From the sequence record KX467643.1: a DNA stretch of 39,399 nucleotides; one strand, written 5' to 3'. The position numbers were made by a program, and so were the translations under genes. Each line of letters starts with the position of its first letter. Positions within the stretch are counted from its first letter, which is position 1. Shown piece after piece: positions 2,350-20,575 of this stretch. The notes beneath the pieces were generated by a model, which was given only the letters and a program-made list of their open reading frames with translations, had not been told where the DNA came from and did no database searches.

Positions 2350-4151
2350 TTGCATAACACCTTTATCATTTTTTCTCCTATTACCTTTTTGCTTATTTCT
2401 TTTTGCGTACAAAGTTCTGTTTTATTGTGTATTCCATTTCTCATCAGTTCTATTGCCCTTTTTCTGCCTATTCCAGGCAATTGAACAAGTGCTAACGCTG
2501 ATGCTGGTACGCCATATCTAATTTCTAAGAATAATAGTCTTAGTTTGTCAGCTAGTTCCTTTTTTCCTAGTGCTTTTGTAATTCTGTATACACCGTATGA
2601 CTGCCATGATAGTGTTTGTACTAACTTATTTAGATCGTTAAGTGTCATGCTTTTTGTTGCCTTTACTATTGTTTTCTCATCAACTCCTTTTATCCATGAG
2701 TTGAATAACGTGTTAACGTTTTCGCCTTTCGATGCGTTTAATACATTTTCGTTCTCTAATATTGCGTTTACTATTTCATCTTCTTTTACATTGTTTTTTG
2801 TTAAAACATCATGGTATGCAATAGCGTCTTTGACATCGAAATATGATTCTGCAACAGCTCTTCCGTAAAGTGTAGTAAAATACCCGGTGCCATCTTGTCC
2901 TATTAATTTTGCTTCATTTAGTTTTTCTAACGTCTGTTTAATCAGTTGTTCACTTACGTTTCTAAACGATATTGTATGTTTTGTTGATTCTAATATCTTA
3001 TCAGGTTTTATATAGATATACTTTGACACTAATGCAAGGAGGAAGTCTTCGAGGACGTGGTGTCCTGTTATTGTGCCGTAATTCGTGTTGAAGTAGGTTC
3101 TTTTTAGTCTTTCCGCTTGTCTAACGTCAGTTGCTTCTATTATGCATAATCCCTCTTCGTCGTATCCAGGACGCCCAGCCCTTCCGCATATTTGGTCGAA
3201 CTCAATTGGCGTAATTTCTTTCCATCCTACGAAACGTCCATACTCTATGATCGGTAGTTTTAGGTCGTCGAATATTACAGCGTAAAATGGGAAGTTAACA
3301 CCCTGTGATAGTGCAGTAGTTGATACGATTATGTTGTATTTCCCTTGACGTGTTTCTTCCAATAACCTTAGTTTTGTCTCTGCGTCTAGTCCTGCGTGAA
3401 AGAACGCTACTTTGTTTTGAAATTTCCTATCGTATATCATGTATAATTCTTCTGCTTTCTTTCTCGTTGATGTGAAGATCATTACTACTTTGTTTTTTCT
3501 TACCATCTTCTTGATAAAGTCTTCCTTCAGCTCTATGACGTCACCGTCCTCAAAGAATAATTTGTTCCCTATTTTAATTGCCTTATAAAGTGGGATCGGT
3601 CTCTCGTCTGTTTTTATTATTTCTGCATCTGTTATTTCCGCTATCTTATCAACGTCAGGTATTGTTGCACTCATTGCCACTATTCTGATTCCTTCGTTCA
3701 TTGTGTATGCTATCAAATTCTCAATAGCTTTTCCTCTTTCCTTGTCACCTATGTTATGTATTTCGTCTATAATCATTACTTCGATTCTATCAGTCCATGG
3801 ATAATGTCTTCTAAATACAGCATCTGCTTTCTCGTAAGTAGTAAAGATTACTCTCTCTTCCAAGTTCTCTGGGTCTTCTTCATAAACTTCTGATGTTAAT
3901 GCTACACTGTCAGCATATCCGTTAACGAGTGGTGCTACTTTGTTATGAAAGTCTTCATTTAGCTGAAGTGCTAGTGCTCTTAATGGTACTGTGTACATTA
4001 CTCTGCTTTTTACTTCCATTGCCATTAACATGGCTAAAAATGACTTACCTGTGCCCGTTGGTGCTGAGATTAACAAGTTTTTATCAGTCATTAAGAATGA
4101 TTGTAATGCATTTTTTTGAAACTCATTTAGTTGTACTGTCACTTTCACCAC
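2346..4151 (-). CDS. SF2 Ski2/Hel308-like DExH helicase, about 600 aa
   Basis: [36 protein letters not shown]; C-terminal Hh[10 protein letters not shown]. Confidence 0.95.
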
Positions 4152-7300: not shown

Positions 7301-7600
7301 TTACTCAATTTCGATTTCTGCATTTATTGCTTCTGCTGTTTGTTCAAGTACTTTTAGTCCATTTGCATATTTTTCAAATCGTTCATTTAATATCTCATCC
7401 GCATTTTCTTTGGCATTTTTTGTTTCATATGAACTGATTGTCTCTATGTAGCCTACAAACTTTTGTTGTTTGTCTTCATACACCAAATCGTTACCTTTCA
7501 CATTTATTACCGCTTTCAATTCAGCCTCAAGTGTTATACTGTAGTCTCTTGTATTTATTTTTAGTTTGTACGAAAGGGTTTTTTGTTTTACTTCCACCAT
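7301..7600 (-). CDS. 99-aa early protein, candidate anti-CRISPR; paralogue of 8165-8452
   Basis: Own promoter at 7631-7644; visible alignment to 8165-8452. Confidence 0.8.
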   Translation of the reverse strand: MVEVKQKTLSYKLKINTRDYSITLEAELKAVINVKGNDLVYEDKQQKFVGYIETISSYETKNAKENADEILNERFEKYANGLKVLEQTAEAINAEIEIE

Positions 7601-7644: not shown

Positions 7645-7755
7645 TGTGTCTTTCTTCTTTTCGTTTTTTCTAACTAAAAAAAACGTGAAAAATTCCATAC
7701 GATAAAAATATTATCAGAAACATGAGAACAATTAGAGATAAAAAAAAGGAGAAAA

Positions 7756-8078: not shown

Positions 8079-8164
8079 TATTTTTTGATTCATGAAAAAA
8101 TGGACAACTTTCCAGATAATATCCAAAACTTGAGAAAAATTATGTATAAAAAAAAGAAATTGAC

Positions 8165-8452: not shown

Positions 8453-8922
8453 TTTGGGTCACTTATATATTCTAATTATATATATATAAAGGTTTCTCTA
8501 TCTTTCTTTTTATCGAATTTTCGTTTTCAATTATGTAGAAGGAGCTGGAATATTATTTCAAAATTGAAAAAAAGTTTGAATACTAATTTATTCACTCAAT
8601 TTAAGGAAACAAAAAAGAATTCAAACAAAAAATCTATTGTTTCAAATACTATTTCAATGACTTTATAATCTATACATAAAAATAATCAGAGTGTAATGTA
8701 GTGAATTGGATAAATTTCTGTTAAAAGAGTTTTCACATTTGGGCTAACCCAAACGACAAAAGTTTTTTCTTTAAAAATGATTTTACGCCCTTCTTTTGCC
8801 TAAAACTTAGGCGGGATAAGGGGAAAAATTGCAAGTTAAGGGTTTAAAAATATTTCTAGTAAAATAACGAGTGTTGTTAAAAAAGATTTTTGTATCCAGA
8901 GTGAAACTAATACTATCTTCTT

Positions 8923-9126
8923 TCAATTATCTAAAAGATTTTTCTGAGTAACGAGAGAAAAATTTTTTATTATTTTTGGGATATTTTGAATCGGAACATA
9001 ATTGAATATTTCTACTGAACCATTTCTTATTAGTTTCACGCTTACAAACAAATTATTGTCTTTTATTTCGATATTTAGTATCTCATATTCTTCTTTCATA
9101 GAATAATACTTATTCAGTATTACCAT
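8923..9126 (-). CDS. Hypothetical protein, 67 aa
   Basis: ORF track; plausible beta-rich small protein; no clear RBS. Confidence 0.55.
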   Translation of the reverse strand: MVILNKYYSMKEEYEILNIEIKDNNLFVSVKLIRNGSVEIFNYVPIQNIPKIIKNFSLVTQKNLLDN

Positions 9127-9205
9127 TTAAAGCAAAATTCTCGATATTACCAAATTGACTGTAATATTATCCAAAACTTGAGAAATATAGTGAATAAAAA
9201 TAAGT

Positions 9206-10885
9206 TTAATAGTGAATGGTGATTATTCCATTATATTCGTTTTCGATAAAATTCATTTTTTTCACCGATTGTTTTATGAACAAGTCATGGTTATAAATAA
9301 TATCCAATACGTATCCTTTTTGTTTATTTTGTGATACTCTCATTACTCTACCAATCCTTTGTATTAATTTGATTCTGCTTTTCCCCTGTGTTAATAATAC
9401 TACTAACCTTAGATTTGGAATATCTAAACCTTCATCTGCTAAAGAAGTCGATATTAATACTTGTAACTTTTCATTTTTCAAAGCTTCAATTTTTTCCATC
9501 CTTTCTTCTAGTTTTGTCTTACTTGTCACAAAGTCTGCAATAATTCCATTTTCTCTCATTATTTCGGCTAGTTTTCTAGCTACTGTTATCCTCCTTACAA
9601 TTATTAAACACGGGTATTGGTTTAATTGTTTTATTTTGTTAATGATTTGCTTGTTTGTATTTGGTGAATGCTCAAATGATCTTAACAGTGAAGAGTAATA
9701 TTTAGCAAAATTTTCAGGGTCTTTATTATCATCTAAATCTTTTATTTTCAGTTTTAGTTTTTTAGGAATTTCTGGAATATACCTTATATATTCTATAGGT
9801 ACTAAATACTTGTTTTTAACTAATTCGTTATAATCTATTGTATATGATATTTTTCCTAACAATCCTTGTATTTCTAACTCTTTTCCGTCCTCTCTTAATG
9901 GGGTGGCGGTCAATCCTAAACGTATTGAATTTGGTGAATCCAGGAGTAGTGATTTCACAATATTTGCAGGAGTATGATGGGCTTCATCTACAATTATCAG
10001 ATCAGCGTTAGCAATTAGCTCTTTCAATTTGTCATGTTCATTTCTCTTCTTTTTAGAGTAGTAATAGGAAATTGATAATGCTATAAAGTTACTTTTCTCT
10101 CCTTTTTGTAATTCATCAACTTCACCGGATACTAATGCAAATGGTAGATCTTCTCTTTTTGCAAAATTCTGAAATTGCTTTAGTAAAGTAGTGGAATTTA
10201 CGGCATATACAATTTTGGCATTAGGTTTGTTTTTTAACATTTCTAAAGCAGATAATATAGCAATTACAGATTTTCCAGAACCAGTAGGGGCTTTTATTAT
10301 TCCGTTCCCTGTTGTGTTAATATCACTAATCCACGCTTTAATACTGCTAACCTGGTAATCCCTCATTTCAAAGTTCTTTAACTGAACATTATAAAATTTG
10401 AAATTGGCAAAAGGCTGGATATTAAGTTTAGAAACGTTTTGTAATTTCCAATACAATCCTCTTAAAGTAGCAAATCCGTAATCTCTTTTCCACGCTAATA
10501 ATATTTCTTCTTCTGTATATTTCCCTTCTTTGTAATCAAATGTTTTTATTTTGTAAGTTAACAAGTTTTTGTATTTTTCTAAGTTATCGTAAATATAGAT
10601 ATAATTTCCTTTTATATATGCGTTTATAATTTCACTATCATTTTTCAAGTAGTCCATGAATGGTGAATAAATTGAATCCCCAACGTATTTGGCTAATTCC
10701 TTAACTATTTCTTTAAAATCGTCTCTCGATAGCCTTTTGACTTTGTATTCATTTATATACCATCTCTTAACACTAGGATCGAAATTAGCTATTTGTTTCA
10801 TTAAATTGGTGTAATTCAAAAAATCTTCTCTTGATAAATATTTATTTGGAGATGGTAAATATACCTTATGATTGATCTGAAACAT
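9206..10885 (-). CDS. SF2 XPB/Rad25-like helicase, 559 aa
   Basis: MRDYQ, APTGSGKS, DEAHH, GLTATP, STSLADEGLDIP, QRIGRVMR. Confidence 0.95.
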   Translation of the reverse strand: MFQINHKVYLPSPNKYLSREDFLNYTNLMKQIANFDPSVKRWYINEYKVKRLSRDDFKEIVKELAKYVGDSIYSPFMDYLKNDSEIINAYIKGNYIYIYDNLEKYKNLLTYKIKTFDYKEGKYTEEEILLAWKRDYGFATLRGLYWKLQNVSKLNIQPFANFKFYNVQLKNFEMRDYQVSSIKAWISDINTTGNGIIKAPTGSGKSVIAILSALEMLKNKPNAKIVYAVNSTTLLKQFQNFAKREDLPFALVSGEVDELQKGEKSNFIALSISYYYSKKKRNEHDKLKELIANADLIIVDEAHHTPANIVKSLLLDSPNSIRLGLTATPLREDGKELEIQGLLGKISYTIDYNELVKNKYLVPIEYIRYIPEIPKKLKLKIKDLDDNKDPENFAKYYSSLLRSFEHSPNTNKQIINKIKQLNQYPCLIIVRRITVARKLAEIMRENGIIADFVTSKTKLEERMEKIEALKNEKLQVLISTSLADEGLDIPNLRLVVLLTQGKSRIKLIQRIGRVMRVSQNKQKGYVLDIIYNHDLFIKQSVKKMNFIENEYNGIITIHY

Positions 10886-10953: not shown

Positions 10954-11289
10954 ATGTCTACTCAAATCCAAATCAAAAAGTTAATTGAAAGGTGTAATTT
11001 TTTAACCACAACTATGTATGAGAAATATGACTTAAGAAGTATACTAAAACCTAACGAAAAATTCATCGTAAGACAAGGAGACCTTATAATAACAAATAAA
11101 TTAATACCAAAACCAGAATTAAGAGGATTGAGACACATATACTTAACCAATTTAACATTCAGAGGATCCCATATAATTTTACCATTCAAAAACTATACTA
11201 CAATTTTCCATAATGAACATGGTCTTGTAATAATTCCAGAGAAAATAGAAAGATTAGCATTTTACACATTTGACAATTCGGTTGATTGA
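10954..11289 (+). CDS. 111-aa RQGD...HxEH motif protein
   Basis: RQGDL, GSH and HNEHG motifs; overlaps the next ORF. Confidence 0.8.
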
Positions 11290-20023: not shown

Positions 20024-20242
20024 ATGAGCTATAGCCAAATATCGTCTTCCCTAAGCTCAGTAGCCACATCTCTGATAACAGCAATCACTAACTTCCTAGC
20101 AGGAGTTGCTAACTTCATAGCACAAAATGCCGACTTATTCGCAACTATCGTAGGCATTGGAATAATAGTAGGATTAATATTGAAATTCGGCACAAGTCTA
20201 CCGTTCATAGGCAACTTCTTAAACTACGTCGGTCTAGCATAA
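20024..20242 (+). CDS. Small hydrophobic membrane/virion protein, 72 aa
   Basis: Amphipathic helix followed by TM segment LFATIVGIGIIVGLIL. Confidence 0.75.
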   Translation: MSYSQISSSLSSVATSLITAITNFLAGVANFIAQNADLFATIVGIGIIVGLILKFGTSLPFIGNFLNYVGLA

Positions 20243-20275
20243 AACTCCTGAAATAAAAATAAGAAAACTATTTTT

Positions 20276-20575
20276 TTATATTTCTCCTCCACATAATTTA
20301 CTTCTCTTCAATTCTGGTACATCTGTACATAAAACTAGGACAATTGCGTTTATTTTCTTATTTATGTCACTCTCATTTAATGCTCTTATAATTATATTAG
20401 TTACCTCTTCACTTCTCATATATTCGATAATCTCCTTTCTTATTTCCTCTTTTTTCGCAATCGTTGTAATATGTTTTATTCGCATGATTGTATATATCAT
20501 TGATACAATATAAAATAAACTCGAAATTATGTAGATAATTGGGAACAACATACTTCCTGTAATTTGGAACGACAT
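20276..20575 (-). CDS. Probable virus-associated pyramid (VAP) egress protein, SIFV gp43-like
   Basis: N-terminal TM (LFPIIYIISSLFYIVSMIYTIM) plus helical body, 91-99 aa; seventh annotated gene after mcp2, the position expected for gp43 if SIFV synteny holds. Confidence 0.65.
   Translation of the reverse strand: MSFQITGSMLFPIIYIISSLFYIVSMIYTIMRIKHITTIAKKEEIRKEIIEYMRSEEVTNIIIRALNESDINKKINAIVLVLCTDVPELKRSKLCGGEI

Follow-up and report, generated by a model that had tools for sequence, protein, structure and literature searches.

A conserved CRISPR-repeat 3′ end beside a non-coding module shared by lipothrixviruses and rudiviruses, a possible mimic of a host Cbp1 site

Introduction

Repeat-like sequences outside ordinary CRISPR arrays are already known as stand-alone repeats in viruses of the Sulfolobales, as bacterial Racrs and as chromosomal non-canonical sites of the CRISPR-repeat-binding protein Cbp1. 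To our knowledge, the archaeal anti-CRISPRs known so far are all proteins and RNA anti-CRISPRs come from bacteria only; we know of no archaeal Racr that has been shown and of no viral Cbp1 site that has been reported.

Among the viral examples, leader-less stand-alone repeats have been reported in 'three other archaeal viruses', which are left unnamed in the accessible text of PMC6858448. For the chromosomal sites, the accessible text of PMC10883916 describes 92 non-canonical (non-array) Cbp1 sites in S. solfataricus P2, with a 21-bp repeat-like motif that is strongest over 6 bp near the repeat 3′ end, has a weaker 5′ A/T part and is unconstrained in the middle. According to the same text, non-canonical sites also lie in the promoters of other CRISPR arrays, Cbp1 dampens nearby promoters, and transcription start sites near non-canonical sites go up upon cbp1 deletion (PMC10883916). 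On the 25-nt A repeat, the double mutants A6/T7, A17/A18, T19/T20 and A22/A23 lower Cbp1 binding and a mid-repeat control mutation leaves it unaffected; Cbp1 ChIP-seq of SIRV2-infected cells also exists, and the accessible part of that paper describes no viral reads (PMC10883916). On the RNA side, S. solfataricus Cas6-1 is described with a 3-bp stem in its substrate (positions 6-8 with 14-16) and a cut at the base before AUUGAAAG; the more permissive Cas6-3 also cleaves a host RNA without this stem, ncRNA60 (PMC4041471).

The window analysed here is the 39,399-nt stretch of sequence record KX467643.1 (the archaeal virus SIFV2). A first-pass annotation, made from the letters of this DNA, had pointed to a solitary CRISPR-repeat-like unit beside anti-CRISPR genes as a possible Racr or mini-array. 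We compared this locus with related viral sequences and asked which of the described systems it resembles most.

Results

The unit AAAAATCTTTTAGATAATTGAAAG occupies positions 8920..8943 on the minus strand of SIFV2. Direct reading confirmed the first-pass count of 19/24 identities to the repeat GATAATCTCTTATAGAATTGAAAG, and this repeat is the published S. solfataricus 'CD' repeat (CD family, GAUAAUCUCUUAUAGAAUUGAAAG; PMC4041471). Arrays 1 and 2 of S. islandicus LAL14/1 carry the S. solfataricus CRISPR F repeat (PMC10883916), a member of the CD family that differs from CD by two nucleotides (PMC4041471). On both strands of the genome 19/24 is the top match to the CD repeat, with a runner-up of 17/24. 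In simulated genomes (400 per Markov order, orders 0, 1 and 3) a match of at least 19/24 arose in 2-4% of cases, corresponding to P ~0.02-0.04 for one repeat; given several repeat families and a post-hoc search, the repeat match is borderline when the SIFV2 genome alone is considered. Two caveats that accompanied the original observation were sound: the tag ATTGAAAG is frequent by chance, occurring four times in the genome against 3.5 expected, and the unit overlaps the end of the open reading frame at 8923-9126, with 21 of its 24 nt inside gp18. This gene (8923..9126, minus strand) encodes a conserved lipothrixviral protein of 67 aa for which a Pfam search found no family. The unit is sense with respect to gp18 transcription, the last gp18 codons overlap it, and the gp18 stop codon TGA (8923-8925) falls within the tag.

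The tag at the 3′ end of the unit is intact, as had been claimed. It belongs to a conserved core, AATTGAAAG (8920..8928, minus strand), which is identical to the last 9 nt of the CRISPR repeat, that is, the crRNA 5′ handle AUUGAAAG plus A16, and which overlaps the region of the Cbp1 core motif as given in the accessible text of PMC10883916. As a separate observation, all four genome copies of AATTGAAAG (~1 expected) lie within 3.5 kb around the anti-defence cluster, at 7513-7521(-), 8920-8928(-), 10021-10029(-) and 10983-10991(+); the other three are located inside gp15 (AcrIA), gp19 (helicase) and gp20, where upstream repeat similarity is weak (13-14/24).

We assembled 31 distinct lipothrix-type sequences with a gp18 homologue, comprising SIFV2, SIFV, AFV9 and sequences from IMG/VR and JGI metagenomes; the metagenome relatives were found by pattern search with the conserved downstream block, and the units were aligned on the tag. 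In this tag-anchored alignment TTGAAAG is invariant in 31/31 and A16 is present in 30/31, while position 17 varies between A (19 sequences), G (11) and T (1). Invariant columns amount to 7/7 in the tag, compared with 2/36 in the non-coding 3′ flank and 3/47 upstream (Fisher P ~1e-6); the 31 sequences are related, which makes column P values overstate independence, yet the contrast with the flanks is still large. Mean pairwise identity is 0.94 at positions 17-24 versus 0.52-0.67 in the flanks. Importantly, the gp18 frame ends upstream of the tag's TGA in 17 of the 31 sequences, and in AFV9 the gp18 homologue stops at a TAG five bases before an intact ATTGAAAG. Since the tag lies outside the gp18 frame in more than half of the set, it is kept for a reason other than protein coding, and the match is thus conserved beyond coding constraints. 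Base composition and coding do not suffice to explain the unit, whose 3′ part is genuinely conserved.

The resemblance over the whole repeat is weak. SIFV (85.5% identity across the 5-kb query) carries two further mismatches in the unit (17/24), AFV9 reaches 13/24, and across the 31 units the match to the CD repeat ranges from 13 to 19 of 24, with a consensus of ~18/24 and positions 8-15 varying freely. The 5′ ATC (positions 5-7) is present in 26-30 of the 31, and we did not count it as independent evidence because it coincides with codons of the semi-conserved ...[D/E]-N-Q tail of gp18.

The idea of a mini-array did not survive this comparison: a second repeat is absent, the 'spacer' is conserved among relatives instead of being exchanged, and no leader was found upstream of the unit, where the gp18 coding sequence lies, promoter-like boxes being located downstream. 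On the minus strand the unit is followed by 28 nt (8919-8892) and then by AAAAATCTTTT (8891-8881), which had been taken for a restart of the same unit. This is a literal 11-nt repeat, but the resemblance ends there: the next 13 nt differ from the unit, and there is no tag after them. The 'restart' is contained in ACAAAAATCTTTTTTAAC (8876..8893, minus strand), a BRE/TATA-like, T-rich motif with a T6 run that relatives have kept and that looks like block 1 of the module described below; the T6 run could serve as an archaeal terminator for gp18. The intervening '28-nt spacer' TTAGTTTCAnTCTGGATAC (8892..8919, minus strand) is conserved sequence and no variable spacer, being identical in SIFV and largely kept in the relatives L018 and L160 and in others, and the BLAST search proposed for it returned no match to other viruses in the phage collection. 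As for the second degenerate copy, TTCTACATAATTGAAAA is present at 8524..8540 (minus strand), but it lacks the final G, matches at ~11/17 and is weak upstream of the tag; it sits in the gp17 upstream region, between two motifs common to early genes, and does not convince as a repeat. No exact CD- or AB-type repeats were found in IMG/VR, a doubled CD repeat yielded noise only in the best 30 of 444 records by blastn against the phage collection, and the locus had no match in the plasmid collection. Separately, we noticed that positions 8898-8912 of the 'pseudo-spacer' are complementary over 14/15 nt to 9028-9042 inside the gp18 coding region; this pairing is kept in SIFV via a G-U pair and absent from AFV9, and it may reflect chance or an mRNA 3′ structure.

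We also applied the Cas6-1 stem rule to the units. By this rule the SIFV2 unit does not qualify as a Cas6-1-type substrate: U6-A16 and U8-A14 can pair, and C7/U15 breaks the stem. Of the 31 units, 2 could form all three pairs, 14 two of them, 13 one and 2 none. The suggestion that such processing could give rise to a decoy crRNA is therefore doubtful, as the stem is broken in SIFV2 and complete in only 2/31. Since Cas6-3 cuts the stem-less ncRNA60, processing of the viral unit is conceivable, although our analysis does not favour it.

Immediately downstream of the 'restart', positions 8698..8880 on the minus strand hold a conserved non-coding module of ~185 nt, identified by blastn, alignments and nhmmer (E = 5e-42). 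It is common to SIFV/AFV9-type lipothrixviruses and rudiviruses and is annotated in no record. By nhmmer the module occurs once each in SIFV2, SIRV2 and SRV, and it is 74% identical in AFV9. Tag and module co-occur in the SIFV/AFV9 clade; in the fetched AFV3/6/7/8 loci nhmmer detected no module, and no tag follows the gp18 homologue there either. The rudiviruses with the module comprise SIRV4-11 from Yellowstone, the Icelandic SIRV1, SIRV2 and SIRV3, and SRV from the Azores, with coordinates 20175-20360 (minus strand) in SIRV2 (NC_004086, L152) and 675-862 in SRV (L155). In SIRV1-3 it fills the space from the DUF1874 (AcrIII-1 family) gene to ORF1070, and in SRV it lies between other genes; on account of these differing neighbours it behaves as a portable unit.

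Read along the minus strand, the SIFV2 module opens with block 1, CGTTATTTTACTAGAAATATTTTTAAAC (CGTTAnTTTACnAGAAAnnTTTTTAAAC), which is BRE/TATA-like (8842..8869), followed by a fast-evolving segment (8788..8822) with the nested hairpin CCCTT...GCCTAA-GTT-TTAGGC...AAGGG (fold -13.0 kcal/mol). The hairpin of this segment is lineage-specific, the SIFV version being TCCTTAA/TTAGGGA with a G-U wobble. Block 2, GCGTAAAATCATTTTTAAAGAAAAAACTTTT (GCGTAAAnnnnTTTnTAAAGAAAAAAnTTTT), was delineated by pattern searches and alignment as a second BRE/TATA-like box (8758..8788, minus strand), and beyond it lies the palindrome/hairpin TTTGGGTTAGCCCAAA (8738..8753, minus strand), whose arms differ between lineages. 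We considered the module as a structured RNA and rejected this candidate, since RNAalifold on 17 diverse copies gave essentially no consensus fold (-0.59 kcal/mol, with one invariant TTACG/CGTAA stem) despite the lineage-specific hairpins with their G-U wobbles. A C/D-box sRNA was likewise rejected: AUGAUGA is found in the rudiviruses and the D box is absent. Rfam gave no match at gathering thresholds over the whole genome and noise only at E up to 10 for the locus. Given that neither a consensus fold nor an Rfam match emerged, we describe this element as a promoter-like regulatory module or small transcription unit. In one rudivirus-like contig (IMGVR_UViG_3300026762_000052; L025 631-862), the variable segment of the module contains a 48-nt insertion that bears its own GGCGT-TTTTT-ACGCC hairpin and resembles a local duplication of the GCGTAAA block.

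The position of the tag relative to the module is highly regular. In the 31 lipothrixvirus sequences it lies on the strand of block 1, 133 or 145 nt before block 2. In rudiviruses the corresponding GAATTGAAAG is on the opposite strand relative to the module, at a constant 44 nt from a conserved AAATTGTAATG box, and is exact in 22 of 30 distinct rudivirus lineages and altered by one substitution in 6 of 30. It forms an island between sequence-variable flanks, the inner of which is constant in length. In SIRV2 the tag site TAATTGAAAG (~20,400-20,420, plus strand) places the tag on the coding strand 31 nt upstream of the ORF1070 start codon. The tag is thereby sense to a neighbouring gene in both families, gp18 in lipothrixviruses and ORF1070 in rudiviruses. 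SRV has the module, and the tag was not found there. We additionally observed that the rudiviral tag and the AAATTGTAATG box are always separated by 34 nt in ~30 lineages (e.g. L005 1127-1190, L006, L007 and L024), and that the intervening stretch comprises several unrelated sequence types, which recombine independently of the variable sequence across the tag.

The Acr-island setting assigned to the unit is borne out by its neighbours. The gap between gp18 and gp17 (8453-8922) is the largest intergenic space of the genome and borders gp14-gp17, which have been predicted and experimentally screened as early anti-defence genes, gp15 being an AcrIA (PMC11065993). The gp17 early promoter (8475..8498, minus strand) is of the GAGAAAnnTTTATATA type common to gp14-gp16 (PMC11065993).

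Several further features of this neighbourhood deserve mention in their own right. A ~38-nt motif, TTTTTATnCAnnAATTnTTCTCAAGTTTTGGATAATATT, distinct from the GAGAAAnnTTTAAATAT early promoter core, lies upstream of gp18 (9163-9200), gp16 (8116-8152) and gp15 (7707-7744) and, in a weaker form, gp17 (8549-8573), all on the minus strand; it may be part of the published early-gene 'consensus regulatory sequence' or a terminator-plus-operator unit. The gp18-gp17 gap of SIFV (SIFV0021-0020) has 108 nt extra relative to SIFV2 (window ~8590; L002 ~3040-3150), flanked by direct repeats AAATTAGTA(T/C)TCAAAC, which suggests a deletion or duplication between short repeats. In AFV7, AFV3, AFV6 and AFV8 (L011-L014) the gp18 homologue stands in a different gene arrangement, and three of these four have a 380-625-nt non-coding gap after it; within this gap there is separate conserved sequence, for example CCCTAATTTGGGG in AFV3, which is found as the inverse CCCCAATTTAGGG in AFV7.

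Discussion

We tentatively propose, as the best of several readings although short of an even chance, that the unit has been selected to imitate the CRISPR repeat of the host at its 3′ end (A-R-TTGAAAG), acts as DNA and is a candidate Cbp1 site. As DNA, it would be a 'non-canonical' site for the host CRISPR-repeat-binding protein Cbp1, possibly together with Cren7. Cbp1 on the viral site could tune the adjoining promoters, which cluster along the edge of the early anti-defence genes, and at high viral genome copy number Cbp1 might be drawn off the CRISPR arrays. Both the binding of Cbp1 and its effects on transcription or immunity are what we infer from sequence comparison.

One argument for this proposal is that the viral profile, with constant ends and a free middle, matches the pattern of the Cbp1 mutants. 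When we transfer the numbering of the 25-nt A repeat to the 24-nt CD repeat, the kept viral positions are those critical for Cbp1: A5, T6, A16, T18, T19, A21 and A22 are retained in 30, 26, 30, 31, 31, 31 and 31 of the 31 sequences, respectively, and only A17 falls to 19/31. With AATTGAAAG intact and these positions conserved, the unit would qualify by sequence as a non-canonical Cbp1 site. The proposal is also favoured by the persistence of TTGAAAG in every lipothrixvirus sequence amid flanks of 52-67% identity and, in 17 of them, outside the gp18 frame; by the Cas6-1 stem not being maintained; and by the joint occurrence of tag and module, both of which are missing from the AFV3/6/7/8 loci. 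A DNA site in particular is favoured since the rudiviral tag is inverted relative to the module and yet held at a fixed distance. Other observations point the other way. As the 5′ ATC is explicable by gp18 codons, only 9-10 nt back the resemblance; the sense orientation of the tag to its neighbour gene in both families would suit an RNA role as well; and the SRV module shows that the tag is inessential to the module. We also know of no demonstrated benefit of a single Cbp1 site to a virus, which counts against Cbp1-site mimicry.

Next in our ranking, and unlikely on present evidence, is an RNA decoy resembling a Racr, host ncRNA60 or a crRNA handle. In the predicted route, the gp18 transcript would bear the unit and a relaxed Cas6 paralogue would cut before AUUGAAAG, giving an 8-nt handle plus ~35-40 nt that would end at the T run at 8885-8880; as a pseudo-crRNA without a target, the product would enter type I-A or type III complexes in competition with real crRNAs. 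Such a decoy is consistent with the tag being sense to gp18 and to ORF1070, with A16 plus handle being the conserved part, and with a tag-to-T-run distance that corresponds to a crRNA-sized RNA. It has precedents in Racrs, which are solitary repeat units often near acr genes (PMC10651486), and in the degenerate, stem-less ncRNA60, which is cut by Cas6-3 and whose product enters the Csm complex (PMC4041471), and its location fits, since the unit borders anti-defence genes in SIFV2 and adjoins the DUF1874/AcrIII-1 gene in SIRV1-3. Yet the Cas6-1 stem (6-16, 7-15, 8-14) is broken in SIFV2 and rarely complete elsewhere, the first handle base varies (G in 11/31), no promoter dedicated to the unit lies directly upstream of it in SIFV2, lipothrixviruses and rudiviruses orient the tag differently to the module, and no Rfam family matches. 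Ranked slightly lower is a motif unrelated to CRISPR, in which TTGAAAG would belong to a viral or host transcription-factor site or to the gp18 3′ end or terminator and its identity with the repeat would be coincidental. BRE/TATA-like boxes and palindromes are dense around the tag, AAGAAGAU right after the tag is able to pair with AUCUUUUU at the T run, the SRV module does without the tag, and strict conservation extends over only 7-10 nt, all of which this explanation would accommodate. Against it, a conserved 7-mer would equal the last 7 nt of the repeat by chance at ~6e-5 per motif by a rough estimate, or, in an alternative estimate, ~4 chance tags multiplied by ~1% invariant non-coding 7-mers give ~0.04; and, whatever the purpose of the site, its match to the published Cbp1 core makes binding of Cbp1 to it in the cell probable.

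Two remaining explanations appear to us equally and highly improbable. One takes the TTG of the tag as the start codon of a small overlapping gene, spanning 8807-8926 in SIFV2 with 39 codons. An MK... frame does open at this TTG in 31/31 and runs for 27-51 codons in 23/31, with GGAG- or GTGA-like bases just upstream in some sequences, but it is anywhere between 10 and 51 codons long and is cut short by early stops throughout entire sub-clades, its best-conserved positions are third codon positions, and much of it coincides with promoter-like blocks that rudiviruses conserve too without having the frame. We therefore rejected a small gene from TTG, as well as read-through of gp18, on variable length and stops. 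The other explanation is a functionless chance resemblance in an AT-rich genome combined with gp18 coding constraint. While 21/24 nt are coding in SIFV2, the SIFV match is the weaker one at 17/24, and P is only ~0.02-0.04 for one prespecified repeat before multiple-testing correction, chance alone accounts poorly for a tag that is invariant in 31 sequences, lies outside the frame in 17 and recurs in rudiviruses, and the metagenomic sequences, with their 52-67% flank identity, are not near-clonal. Altogether, we rank Cbp1-site mimicry above the RNA decoy, the decoy above a CRISPR-unrelated motif, and the TTG-initiated gene and pure chance level with each other at the bottom.

A broader and more speculative possibility, which we consider improbable as a whole, is that a nucleic-acid module for counter-defence or regulation, which hijacks a host repeat-recognising factor, is common to SIFV/AFV9-type lipothrixviruses and most rudiviruses. 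Such a module would be built on the invariant repeat 3′ end and would recruit Cbp1 as DNA, or Cas6 or effector subunits as RNA. If true, it would be the first archaeal non-protein anti-CRISPR. The locus offers a sharply defined invariant target of 7-10 nt that is also present in the genetically tractable SIRV2, and published ChIP-seq and RNA-seq of SIRV2-infected cells could show Cbp1 binding or a small RNA. The analysis also exposes a ~185-nt non-coding module across two virus families that genome records leave unannotated. Should the tag turn out to be an ordinary regulatory motif, the reading as a mini-array and Cas6 decoy is still corrected.

The locus shares features with each of the closest described systems. 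Like the SRUs/Racrs of phages (Camara-Wilpert et al. 2023, PMC10651486), it is a single repeat-like unit without cas genes that adjoins anti-defence genes in sense orientation. Racrs imitate the repeat over its full length, Cas6 hairpin included, and are usually driven by a dedicated promoter (PMC10651486), whereas in the viral unit conservation is confined to the last 9-10 nt, the hairpin is not maintained and the end of a protein gene is overlapped. With the mini-arrays and stand-alone repeats of the Sulfolobales, as presented in the accessible text of Medvedeva et al. 2019 (PMC6858448), it has in common the host order and a repeat family ending in ATTGAAAG; according to that text mini-arrays have at least two host-like repeats, exchangeable spacers and a leader, and the SIFV2 unit is without all three. 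The searchable literature contains no description of the tag or the module in SIFV, AFV9 or SIRVs, although the three viruses unnamed in the accessible text of PMC6858448 may overlap with them.

With the ncRNA60 of S. solfataricus (Sokolowski et al. 2014, PMC4041471) the viral unit shares a degenerate, repeat-like sequence located outside an array and missing the 3-bp stem. The two differ in what is retained: in ncRNA60 the AB-repeat loop (CAAAA) persists alongside a divergent handle, AUUGAUAU, whereas in the viral units it is the handle that persists and the loop that varies. The non-canonical Cbp1 sites of S. solfataricus, as far as the accessible text of PMC10883916 describes them, are isolated like the viral unit, with a ~6-bp 3′-end core, a free middle and an often promoter-near position; they are chromosomal, lie in transposons and CRISPR leaders and are defined by ChIP, whereas the viral unit is a match to them in sequence.
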